Sequence record: MK327931.1
Reading direction: 5' to 3' (one strand)
DNA: 64,000 nt
A program made the translations under genes and the position numbers. The notes beneath the pieces were generated by a model. That model saw only the letters and a program-made list of their open reading frames with translations, was not told the DNA's origin and ran no database searches. Shown piece after piece: positions 16,335 to 16,600 of the stretch (positions are counted from its first letter, which is position 1; every line of letters begins with the position of its first letter).

Positions 16335-16600
16335 AAGTAGTACTGGATACTGTTGCAACAATATCCTACAGTGACCATTTTAGCTAAAGGTGAACTGAGC
16401 ATACTCGAAGTACCTCTCACTGTATTGTACCATAATAAGTCCTTCAGCTATTCAGAACTGAATACTTACATCCTACGTCTAGGTTTTAAATGTGCACTAG
16501 TTGTAATGTGTAGGCACATACGGGTCTGCTTTTAAGCTACTGATTCGGGAATTACAACCTCCCCTAGTGATTCAGTACTGAATACGACCGTCTACATTTA
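16335..16600 (-). ncRNA. candidate structured ncRNA (~270 nt) with possible pseudoknot
   Basis: Nested stems CACUAG/CUAGUG and UUGUAAU/AUUACAA; crossing stems AGCUGAAGG/CCUUUAGCU and UACAGUGA/UCACUGUA; terminal hairpin plus U-tract. Confidence 0.6.

Follow-up and report, generated by a model that had tools for sequence, protein, structure and literature searches.

The closest described counterparts of the RNA considered here are non-coding RNAs that lie among tRNA genes in phage DNA. The species 1 and species 2 RNAs of bacteriophage T4 (rnaC and rnaD) are stable non-tRNA RNAs encoded inside the phage tRNA cluster and, to our knowledge, have lacked a function for 50 years. GOLLD and ROOL, ornate orphan RNAs of 500–800 nt from other hosts, also tend to adjoin tRNA genes in phage and prophage DNA, as the present element does. 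In the tRNA islands of about 50 kb found in jumbo phages of the Rak2 group, almost nothing but the tRNAs has been annotated. A further point of comparison is the bacterial Y RNA YrlA (RF02553), a structured non-coding RNA in some cases encoded by phages, which combines a tRNA-like T arm and D arm with the 5' motif GNCGAAN0-1G (Chen et al. 2014, PMC4201824).

The window analysed here, a stretch of 64,000 nt from record MK327931.1, derives from an Asteriusvirus jumbo coliphage and is 100% identical to phage G17. Its tRNA region contains an element on the minus strand (16330–16600) that comprises a conserved core of ~170 nt and an Asteriusvirus-specific 3' extension ending in U7. Read from 16600 to 16330, on the strand of all genes and tRNAs surrounding it, the element is bounded by the stop codon of a 71-aa ORF and by a hairpin followed by the U7 tract, the latter already noticed in the first-pass annotation. 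That annotation had proposed a structured RNA of ~270 nt in the tRNA region, and comparative evidence bears the proposal out; because of this evidence, and not of pairings within a single sequence, the element is judged very probably to be a real, selected structured RNA. ARAGORN and Rfam place seven tRNAs in the window and none within the element. Rfam 15 (4227 models) at gathering thresholds gives only tRNAs in the window, a search of 15900–17000 at E<=10 gives nothing within 16335–16600, and the homologues in Kae01, CBB and Hallingskeid (introduced below) have no Rfam match on the element. The models of self-cleaving ribozymes, the group I intron, GOLLD and ROOL also remained without a match, in agreement with the earlier statement that neither a tRNA T-loop nor a hammerhead core is visible. 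With YrlA the element shares its nature as a structured, phage-encoded RNA, but it has no RF02553 match, lacks the T arm, the D arm and the GNCGAA motif, and contains neither G.CGAA nor GGUUCGA. YrlA-like modules are present in the same tRNA islands of CBB, GAP32 and their relatives L034 and L037, with scores of 31–45 bits that lie under the gathering score of 69, and two of them stand directly upstream of the element in CBB; no YrlA-like match occurs anywhere in the window. The element resembles tRNA (RF00005) in that several arms are closed by a 7-bp stem, two arm loops may be in contact and the locus lies in a tRNA island, but its length is over double that of a tRNA, the conserved tRNA nucleotides are missing and ARAGORN and Rfam fail to detect it.

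Across 37 Asteriusvirus phage records the element is 92.7–100% identical, forming a conserved island (88–98% identity) between flanks of 44–75%: identity is 50–75% above 16600 and about 45% at 16200–16300, and conservation spans the full 270 nt. The island also includes a promoter, TTGACA-16-TATAAT (16300–16327, minus strand), which agrees with the sigma-70 consensus at 12 of 12 positions, sits directly past the U-tract and hence outside the RNA, and is the start of the next transcription unit, containing small ORFs and tRNA-Thr. In none of the lineages did a conserved promoter turn up ahead of the element. Since the element begins in the window 3 nt past a stop codon and has no conserved promoter immediately upstream, it could equally be a structured 3' UTR, and the view that it is the gene for a previously undescribed structured non-coding RNA is held by a slight preference. 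In most deposited genomes the element falls in an unannotated gap or beneath spurious small ORF calls. The neighbouring genes all belong to PHROGs of unknown function, the gene neighbourhood points to no protein partner, and a transcriptome or non-coding RNA report on these phages was not found in the literature.

Searches with nhmmer and chaining of blastn matches uncovered diverged homologues of the first ~170 nt in four phages from other genera, namely Salmonella phage Munch, Klebsiella phage fENko-Kae01 (Kae01), Pectobacterium phage CBB and Erwinia phage Hallingskeid. From these four, with no Asteriusvirus sequence included, a covariance model (R1) was constructed, which returned the element as its top match in 64 kb on both strands (27.8 bits, E 2.8e-6); the full-length model aligned to 16422–16600 (minus strand), the core common to the four phages. 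The same model recovers all 16 Asteriusvirus copies with 21–36 bits. The known independent lineages number only four, and the Asteriusvirus copies scarcely differ from one another. Downstream of the core lies tRNA-Gly in Munch, fENko-Kae01 and Hallingskeid, and an ADP-ribosyltransferase (ART) gene with its own ATAAATA-type motif in CBB. Synteny through this ART gene led to GAP32 and four further jumbo-phage loci, none with the element; GAP32, which is the sister phage of CBB, lacks it throughout its 50-kb tRNA island, so that it is dispensable in that phage. Scans with exact and architecture patterns matched only 121Q and CBB in IMG/VR, and one metagenome scan of this kind yielded a single true Asteriusvirus contig (L010) along with ten unrelated satellite arrays. 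A pattern scan of a bacterial and archaeal genome collection of 185,579 species gave no match, nor did one of 5,426 E. coli genomes. The pattern TTTCACGAGGCNNGCAC hit 25 IMG/VR loci, every one of which R1 identifies as a chance match. The T4 RNAs are of a similar size class (119–139 nt) and, according to the T4 annotation, lie on the same strand as the tRNAs and directly adjoin one. R1 run with filters off over T4 68500–74500 found nothing meaningful at rnaC or rnaD (<=2.4 bits), and the two are set aside as relatives for want of detectable homology; rnaC moreover ends in a recognisable T-arm (GGGUUCGAAUCCC), of which the element has none.

The alignment points to a core fold, considered likely as a whole, in which a long-range 7-bp stem (T) would close a multi-branch structure of ~150–170 nt (16600 to ~16440). 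Inside T, arm X, capped by an 8-nt loop, would follow directly, and would be succeeded by a small variable hairpin (hp1), a purine-rich junction and arm L. Helix T pairs UAUUCAG (16578–16584) with CUGAAUA (16449–16455; all coordinates on the minus strand); it is 100% paired in all 17 distinct sequences, and two of its pairs are changed on both sides, reading UU/AA in the window group and in Hallingskeid and AC/GU in Munch and CBB. T is also recovered when the RNAs of the window, CBB and Hallingskeid are each folded singly by MFE. Helix X joins UACUGA(AU) (16570–16577) to (AA)UCAGUA (16538–16545) and is likewise 100% paired, with four of six pairs changed on both sides: UACUGA/UCAGUA in the window is replaced by UACUGG/CCAGUA in Munch, UACUAG/CUAGUA in CBB and GGCAG/CUGCU in Hallingskeid. 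It extends to 8 bp in 12 of the 16 Asteriusvirus copies. The arm ends in an apical hairpin, GGGGA[ GGUUGUAA ]UUCCC (16547–16564) with an 8-nt loop, for which Munch has GGA[ AGUAGUGA ]UCC and CBB GAG[ AGUAGUGA ]CUC, a compensatory difference. The hairpin hp1 (GCU UAAA AGC, 16528–16537) keeps its position while its sequence varies; two of its pairs are changed on both sides, and a C-to-U change in UE-S1 and vB_Ec-M-J leaves a U-G pair. Helix L, CCUAC (16510–16514) with GUAGG (16472–16476), is GCCAGC/GUUGGC in Munch and CBB and GCGUGC/GUACGC in Hallingskeid, and two of its pairs are changed on both sides. Among the Asteriusvirus copies, U-G replaces C-G in five and U-A in one. Its assignment in the window is made by analogy, since the covariance model left L unaligned, and MAFFT places the window GUAGG opposite a different Munch segment. 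MAFFT applied to the L arms alone is unusable for pair counts because the helix ends are unaligned. Another candidate helix, GGUUGU/ACAACC in Munch and CBB, was discarded: it conflicts with the covarying hairpin L2 and is missing in the window and in Hallingskeid.

Statistical support for this fold, and for a structured RNA in general, comes from several directions. On a plain MAFFT alignment, RNAalifold recovers T, X, hp1, L and L2 unaided, with 13 of 45 pairs changed on both sides. The T/X/L model evaluated on the same alignment is 93% paired, and 12 of its 40 pairs are changed on both sides against at most three when the partners are slid; none of 500 shuffles reaches the observed values. 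On the alignment of 17 sequences the model is 89% paired with a covariation of 0.223, as compared with at most 0.068 when slid. Two hairpins of the element show compensatory changes within Asteriusvirus as well, and in one of them a UUCG tetraloop arises. The helices are rich in G-U pairs and poor in A-C mismatches, whereas on the plus strand each G-U would read as a C-A mismatch; the plus strand folds no better than shuffles (z -0.97). Folding energy by itself is less telling, the minus-strand MFE z-score being only -2.05, with 10 of 200 shuffles folding equally well.

As the elbow of tRNA is locked by its D and T loops, so the two long arms of the core may be locked together by a loop–loop pseudoknot in which the X-arm loop pairs with the interior of arm L, over 8–9 bp in the window. 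The pairing would join GGUUGUAAU (16559–16551) to AUUACAACU (16499–16507). It would comprise eight contiguous Watson-Crick pairs in the window (p=0.013) and seven in Munch with different letters, GUGAUCC/GGAUCAC (p=0.013), and an A-to-G change in 9 of the 16 Asteriusvirus copies retains a G-U pair. In CBB and Hallingskeid it is reduced to 4 bp, which is not significant, and there an alternative partner of the X loop, GUCAUU in the 3' junction, fits better. On balance the contact is favoured, and with it the earlier view that the element contains a pseudoknot is probably correct, at a different place.

In Asteriusvirus the core appears to carry a lineage-specific extension of ~110 nt made up of stem a, a covarying hairpin of the UUCG type, stem b and an intrinsic terminator, which would set the 3' end. 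This 3' domain is entirely absent from the other four lineages. Stem a (9 bp; AGCUGAAGG, 16441–16449, with CCUUUAGCU, 16382–16390) is part of the MFE fold of the domain, contains the Shine–Dalgarno-like GAAGGA in its 5' strand and shows a single A-C mismatch, in JP4; its AAGG/CCUU is the counterpart of the tail hairpin UAAGG[UGG]CCUUA of Munch, CBB and Hallingskeid. Stem b consists of eight Watson-Crick pairs between UACAGUGA (16417–16424) and UCACUGUA (16367–16374). Among the 16 Asteriusvirus copies, one U-A pair becomes U-G in two, the terminal pair is lost in seven and no compensatory change is seen. In the MFE fold 16377–16370 is paired with 16344–16338, so the 3' strand of b overlaps the lower terminator stem, and stem b and the full terminator are mutually exclusive. 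The pseudoknot proposed in the first-pass annotation, in which stem a crosses stem b, is tentative and rated less likely than not, and would be specific to Asteriusvirus. Between the two stems lies the hairpin GAGGUAC-UUCGA-GUAUGCUC (16397–16416), which in five Asteriusvirus copies reads GAUGC-UUCG-GCAU: A-U is replaced by G-C, G-U by A-U and the loop by a UUCG tetraloop, and the variant includes two 1-nt deletions. The predicted intrinsic terminator (16330–16366) is composed of GGAUAUUG-UUGCAA-CAGUAUCC, followed by AGUACUAC and U7; with its lower stem the hairpin ends 1 nt before U7, and a simple consensus scan missed it because 8 nt part the upper stem from the U-run. One of its G-C pairs is changed to A-U in Turkey5 and JNE01, to G-U in vB_Ec-M-J and to A-C in two copies, and a U-G pair becomes C-G in two copies. 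The domain also holds a mini-ORF of 17 codons opened by GAAGGA and an AUG (16445–16431), the only one preceded by a Shine–Dalgarno-like motif, which spans the b 5' strand, the hairpin and the a 3' strand. A protein-coding gene or conserved peptide is rejected, because single-base indels put this mini-ORF in three different reading frames, with 17, 15 or 55 codons in different Asteriusvirus copies. Although the window peptide is rich in Phe and Tyr, leader-peptide attenuation as a conserved function is rejected as well, because the frame is not preserved.

The structure has so far been described in terms of the T/X/L core, and two other readings of the same letters bear on it. The first-pass annotation had drawn a 5' domain of four pairings and a possible 3' H-type pseudoknot. 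Taken as a nested 5' stack (AAAUGU/ACAUUU outermost, UUGUAAU/AUUACAA innermost) with an AUGUG/CACAU hairpin, a 3' knot and perhaps the activity of a ribozyme, this model has little chance of being right. All the segments it quotes exist at the quoted positions on the minus strand, stem a has its counterpart in other lineages, and crossing stems of at least 8 bp arise in only 0.1% of shuffles of the 87-nt 3' domain, a region picked after the fact. Taken alone, however, its complementarities are not beyond chance: when the 273 nt are dinucleotide-shuffled, stems of 8 bp or more turn up in 95% of the shuffles, and two of them cross in 46%. The nested fold leaves out T and X, the best-supported helices, and evaluates to -12 kcal/mol where the MFE fold reaches -39. 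On the family alignment it is 72% paired with a covariation of 0.057, a count on a model-fitted alignment that is only partly informative because insert columns are unaligned there. The alignment leans to T/X/L, and the nested 5' fold is not the conserved one. Its pairings fare unequally. AAAUGU/ACAUUU (16599–16594 with 16493–16488) is present but shows no covariation and would cross T; as a leader-to-L pseudoknot it was also dismissed, its 5–6-bp analogues in Munch and Hallingskeid standing in a different register and CBB having none, which cannot be told from chance. CACUAG/CUAGUG (16569–16564 with 16500–16495) is used by the MFE fold of the window, but C-A or A-A/U-U mismatches break it without compensation in 9 of 16 Asteriusvirus copies. 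UUGUAAU/AUUACAA (16557–16551 with 16507–16501) is retained, not as a nested stem but as the putative tertiary loop–loop contact, and the AUGUG/CACAU hairpin (16519–16515 with 16510–16506), though present, competes with covarying helix L. The 3' domain is missing from four lineages, and no ribozyme family matches. A 16-nt motif does recur at 16570–16585 and 16450–16465, as had been noted; rather than hairpins or a repeated module, its copies supply the 5' strands of T (first half of copy 1) and X (second half of copy 1) and the T 3' strand (second half of copy 2). This motif underlies the other reading, a feature of the DNA itself, in which a dimeric protein would bind the palindromes ATTCAGTACTGAAT, or these would belong to a genome-wide AGTACT system, and RNA structure would be incidental. 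The 14-nt palindrome occurs twice, with a third partial copy 115–120 bp further on; the motif contains CAGTACTG, the commonest palindromic 8-mer of the whole window, and AGTACT is found there 138 times against about 22 expected, a 6.4-fold over-representation. Such a reading is nevertheless highly improbable: palindromicity is lost in Munch, CBB and Hallingskeid, where the halves covary with distant partners, the G-U pairs and the UUCG loop are strand-specific features of RNA, and conservation covers the whole 270 nt and not just two sites.

As for function, we infer that the RNA would be made early by the host RNA polymerase within transcripts of the tRNA island, would be released through termination or tRNA-type processing and would then act in trans, binding a protein of RNA metabolism as a stable and compact scaffold or decoy; the chances of such a stable trans-acting RNA are put at about even. 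If the finding holds, a new RNA family with a defined fold would join the very short list of phage-encoded stable RNAs, with a covariance model available to find further members and a compact target of ~170 nt for probing, pull-down and deletion in phages grown on E. coli K-12; together with the YrlA-like modules of sister phages, it would make these islands general depots of structured RNA and not simple codon-supply units. An unlikely alternative to the trans-acting role is a cis-acting leader or attenuator, whose core would sense a ligand, tRNA or protein and whose 3' extension would be the expression platform: stem b would act as antiterminator against the lower terminator stem, and translation of the mini-ORF or a ligand would decide read-through into the small ORFs and tRNA-Thr. 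The overlap of the b 3' strand with that stem and the opening of the mini-ORF over these segments fit the idea, as do the alternative pairing of a junction segment with the X loop in Munch, CBB and Hallingskeid and the ability of the second palindrome to pair with the X 5' strand in the window. Against it, no consistent platform with a regulated gene is found, what lies downstream differing by lineage (a terminator and a strong independent promoter in the window, tRNA-Gly in Munch, Kae01 and Hallingskeid, the ART gene in CBB) and the terminator being confined to Asteriusvirus; the mini-ORF varies in frame and length, no covariation distinguishes stem b from the terminator stem, and a perfect promoter right past the U-tract would leave control of read-through nearly pointless. 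Still less probable is a phage riboregulator of a new class that incorporates a conformational switch, sensing for instance tRNA status or serving as a structural decoy. Its X loop would alternate between arm L and the 3' junction, with b competing with the terminator in the window; as a decoy it would sequester, early in infection, a host enzyme that targets tRNA or processes RNA, such as an anticodon nuclease, an RNase or a Ro/Rtc-type factor. A comparably low probability attaches to a derived tRNA or Y RNA-style mimic, which would signal processing or would draw off tRNA-binding enzymes as a decoy. T would then correspond to a 7-bp acceptor-like stem, X to a D-like, hp1 to an anticodon-like and L to a T-like arm, and two of the arms would meet in an elbow. 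Neither ARAGORN nor the Rfam models of tRNA and YrlA pick up the element even at E<=10; consensus T-loop and D-loop nucleotides, a CCA and the GNCGAA motif (PMC4201824) are all missing, the arms greatly exceed tRNA arms in length, and ~24 nt of junction lie between L and the T 3' strand. The resemblance nonetheless extends to the four-branch, cloverleaf-like topology closed by 7 bp, the D-loop-like 8-nt X loop (AGUAGUGA), the 7-nt L2 loop of Munch and CBB and the putative loop contact from arm to arm, as well as to the location in tRNA islands that house YrlA-like mimics in CBB, GAP32 and relatives, with tRNA-Gly following in three phages. A faint similarity to tRNA-Thr is also seen in the 3' domain of the window (UAUGCUCAGU, AAAUGGUCAC).

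The candidate RNA element occupies window positions 16600->16330 and, on comparative evidence, is a real structured RNA family, apparently undescribed so far. The surrounding stretch (16000-16900) is 100% identical to Escherichia phage vB_EcoM_G17, phAPEC6, and Sharanji, which are Asteriusvirus jumbo myoviruses with genomes of ~350-370 kb. Every gene in this part of the window, like its seven tRNAs, is encoded on the minus strand, so the element runs in reverse-complement orientation (16600->16330). Its start lies 3 nt beyond the stop codon of an ORF of 71 aa (16603-16818, minus), and its 3' end is formed by a hairpin and U7. 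Directly after this U-tract, a sigma-70 promoter with a 12/12 consensus match (TTGACA-16-TATAAT; 16327->16300, minus) opens the next unit of small ORFs and tRNA-Thr. The -10 hexamer of this promoter shares bases with the start codon (ATG) of a small ORF (MKRKQ...), which is swapped for unrelated sequence in half of the relatives, with the promoter retained there. By blastn, the element was detected in 37 phage records, all belonging to Asteriusvirus, with 92.7-100% identity and at least 97% coverage. Against six diverse relatives it forms an island of 88-98% identity, whereas the upstream genes are 50-75% identical and positions 16200-16300 ~45%. Copy number of tRNA genes in the island also differs between close Asteriusvirus relatives: Turkey5 and JNE01 (L002/L003 1240-1392) carry two adjacent tRNA-Thr genes, compared with one in the window.

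Single-sequence evidence is limited. The complementary segments and the 16-nt repeat listed in the first-pass annotation are all present where it placed them, and taken alone they are unremarkable. Stems of at least 8 bp occur in 95% of dinucleotide shuffles of the 273 nt, and crossing pairs of such stems in 46%. The MFE z-score is -2.05 on the minus strand, with 10/200 shuffles folding equally well, and -0.97 on the plus strand. Across the window, Rfam 15 at gathering thresholds returned only tRNAs; within the element, there were zero Rfam matches at E<=10, and ARAGORN found neither tRNA nor tmRNA. The annotation's broader proposal of a structured RNA outside the described families was right.

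Distant homologues were also detected. An nhmmer search with a profile built on the Asteriusvirus copies returned a weak match (E 0.013) in Salmonella phage Munch, located in an unannotated gap just upstream of tRNA-Gly, a region examined because homologues of the 71-aa and 133-aa neighbour proteins are present there. Starting at Munch, blastn chaining led on to Klebsiella phage fENko-Kae01 (97%), Pectobacterium phage CBB (82%), and Erwinia phage Hallingskeid (75-83%). The first ~170 nt of the window element (the core) are common to these four phages, and the last ~110 nt are missing in all of them. The core is followed by tRNA-Gly in Munch, fENko-Kae01, and Hallingskeid, and by an ART-PolyVal-domain gene in CBB. 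Asteriusvirus, the Munch group, CBB, and Hallingskeid carry the element, which is absent from the 50-kb tRNA island of GAP32 and four other jumbo-phage loci; neither a pattern scan of bacterial genomes nor a search of E. coli genomes found it. It is an accessory gene with a patchy distribution. The gene downstream of the element in both Munch (CDS_453, L028 22620-23309) and CBB (CBB_455, L030 832-1375), annotated as hypothetical, encodes an ART-PolyVal ADP-ribosyltransferase domain (PF18760, 42.8 bits, cut-off 31.2) and is preceded by a conserved CATAAATATTC motif resembling the late-promoter motif described for CBB. In addition, a terminator-like hairpin with a T-run lies ~20 nt upstream of the Munch copy (L028 22216-22244). 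If this hairpin terminates, transcription of the copy and its tRNA-Gly would depend on a separate promoter within the short A/T-rich spacer, where a promoter scan found none.

A covariance model (R1) was built from a MAFFT alignment of the four non-Asteriusvirus sequences (A1) with helices annotated by eye, and therefore contains zero Asteriusvirus sequences. Its best match on both strands of the 64-kb window is 16600-16422(-), spanning the full-length model (27.8 bits, E 2.8e-6), and all 16 copies in the Asteriusvirus alignment score 21-36 bits. The second-best match (9074-9173, +; 11.8 bits, E 0.07) is partial, covers only the X arm and hp1, lies on the strand opposite the genes, and is probably noise. 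Without helix input, RNAalifold recovered the same helices from A1, with 13/45 pairs changing on both sides. In a direct count on A1, an alignment not fitted to structure, the model is 93% paired and 12/40 pairs change on both sides; with partners slid, at most 3 do, and 0/500 shuffles attain the observed values. In a 17-sequence alignment, helices T and X are both 100% paired, with two pairs of T and four of the six pairs of X changed on both sides, and the covariation score is 0.223 compared with at most 0.068 with partners slid, in an alignment that leans towards the model. Such comparisons show a selected, strand-specific, multi-helix RNA structure.

In the resulting fold (RNA position i = window 16603-i; all helices minus strand), the core is closed by T (16584-16578/16455-16449), which reads UAUUCAG/CUGAAUA in the window and Hallingskeid and UAACCAG/CUGGUUA in Munch and CBB, and recurs when the window, CBB, and Hallingskeid RNAs are each folded alone by MFE. 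Helix X (16577-16572/16543-16538) changes from UACUGA/UCAGUA in the window to UACUGG/CCAGUA in Munch, UACUAG/CUAGUA in CBB, and GGCAG/CUGCU in Hallingskeid, and extends to 8 bp in 12/16 Asteriusvirus copies. Its apical hairpin (16564-16547) is GGGGA[GGUUGUAA]UUCCC in the window, GGA[AGUAGUGA]UCC in Munch, and GAG[AGUAGUGA]CUC in CBB. The small hairpin hp1 (16537-16528; GCU UAAA AGC in the window) is variable in other lineages. Helix L is GCCAGC/GUUGGC in Munch and CBB and GCGUGC/GUACGC in Hallingskeid, and three compensatory pairs distinguish Munch from CBB in the inner hairpin L2. The window's L (16514-16510/16476-16472, CCUAC/GUAGG) is assigned by analogy with these lineages; R1 leaves it unaligned, and MAFFT places the window ACGUAGG against a neighbouring Munch segment. 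Apparently a ~14-nt deletion shifted the register of the 3' strand, and the 5' strand then adapted to it.

The fold drawn in the first-pass annotation is largely wrong. Its nested 5' domain is 72% paired with a covariation of 0.057 in the family alignment, a count that is only indicative because insert columns are poorly aligned there. CACUAG/CUAGUG becomes C-A in 7 and A-A/U-U in 2 of 16 copies; in AUGUG/CACAU, a competitor of L, every change is wobble-neutral; and the invariant AAAUGU/ACAUUU crosses T. Of the supposed repeat, copy 1 comprises the 5' strands of both T and X, and copy 2 provides the 3' strand of T. UUGUAAU/AUUACAA is retained, reinterpreted as a putative loop-loop tertiary contact crossing X. 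Complementarity between the 8-nt X-arm loop and the inside of arm L amounts to eight contiguous Watson-Crick pairs in the window (GGUUGUAAU/AUUACAACU; p=0.013) and seven in Munch (GUGAUCC/GGAUCAC; p=0.013); in CBB and Hallingskeid it is 4 bp only and not significant. In Munch, CBB, and Hallingskeid, the X loop can alternatively pair with GUCAUU in the 3' junction, an option that strengthens as the arm-L contact weakens. For the window RNA, the alternative is pairing between the second palindrome and the 5' strand of X; these alternatives might form a switch.

A pseudoknot is better supported at a site other than the one proposed. The annotated knot crosses stem a (16449-16441/16390-16382) with stem b (16424-16417/16374-16367), both in the Asteriusvirus-only 3' extension. 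Stem a appears in the MFE fold of this extension, and its AAGG/CCUU matches UAAGG[UGG]CCUUA of other lineages, which is why the extension looks like an insertion into the tail-hairpin loop. Stem b has eight Watson-Crick pairs, one of which becomes U-G in 2 copies, and its terminal pair is lost in 7; no compensatory change was found among the 16 Asteriusvirus copies. Its 3' strand overlaps the lower stem joining the terminator hairpin to the U-run, making b and the full terminator mutually exclusive. The a-by-b knot is a rather doubtful possibility, stem b may alternatively serve as an antiterminator, and the X-loop/arm-L pseudoknot is better supported. Hairpin 16416-16397 occurs among Asteriusvirus copies as GGUAC-UUCGA-GUAU or GAUGC-UUCG-GCAU, with G-C in place of A-U, A-U in place of G-U, and a UUCG tetraloop as the new loop, and one G-C pair of the terminator stem is A-U in Turkey5 and JNE01; such replacements are minus-strand-specific signatures at the RNA level. 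The only mini-ORF preceded by a Shine-Dalgarno-like sequence (16382-16445, minus; GAAGGA, 7-nt spacer, AUG at 16433) has 17 codons (MVQYSERYFEYAQFTFS, six Phe/Tyr). Since 1-nt indels give three different frames and lengths among relatives, no peptide is conserved. Versions of 15 or 55 codons occur in other frames, one being annotated as a CDS in Turkey5 and JNE01.

The tRNA-island region of CBB was predicted to be early and RpoD-driven (PMC5259590). The RNA would be transcribed together with early tRNA-island genes; in Asteriusvirus the terminator would release it, and in Munch and Hallingskeid RNase P would do so by cleaving at the tRNA that follows. Once free, it might serve in trans as a compact scaffold or decoy. 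Regulation of adjacent genes in cis is less likely because downstream content varies from lineage to lineage and, in the window, the terminator is succeeded by a strong promoter. T4 rnaC and rnaD have a comparable genomic setting, but R1 detected neither. The topology of the RNA recalls that of tRNA in its 7-bp closing stem, four branches, and putative arm-to-arm loop contact, but no tRNA model matches it. It also lacks any YrlA features, and no YrlA-like match occurs in the window. YrlA-like tRNA mimics (31-45 bits; Rfam threshold 69) are arranged in tandem in the islands of CBB (L030 170-590, directly upstream of the element), GAP32 (L033 2600-3000, 4007-4115), and two related genomes (L034, L037 2600-3000). 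Their module order is 5'/3' stem (AGAAUCU.../...AGAUUCU), T arm (GUAGGUUCGAAUCCUAC), closed acceptor-like hairpin, and D arm; they are unannotated in the records examined.

Several further features of the window were observed. AGTACT occurs 138 times against ~22 expected (6.4-fold; the next palindromic hexamer, 2.3-fold), in all three codon phases (52/19/34), for example at 17802, 18262, 18671, and 16573. CAGTACTG, contained in the annotated repeat, is the commonest palindromic 8-mer (25 copies). CCATGG, CAGCTG, AGGCCT, AGCGCT, and ACCGGT (~5 expected each) and CCCGGG (~1 expected) have zero copies, which looks like restriction-site avoidance. The repeated context cTTGACTaaatagttCAGTACTGTATAAT (17802-17830, 18262-18290, 18671-18699; minus), a sigma-70-like promoter with an extended -10, precedes small ORFs between tRNAs and holds the over-represented palindrome within its spacer. 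ARAGORN also predicted two tRNAs of the long-variable-arm type on the minus strand: a tRNA-Ser of 92 nt (17693-17784) whose anticodon, ACU, is unusual and a 90-nt tRNA-Met(CAU) (17596-17685), the latter having a long arm that is odd for a CAU tRNA and possibly being of a different identity.
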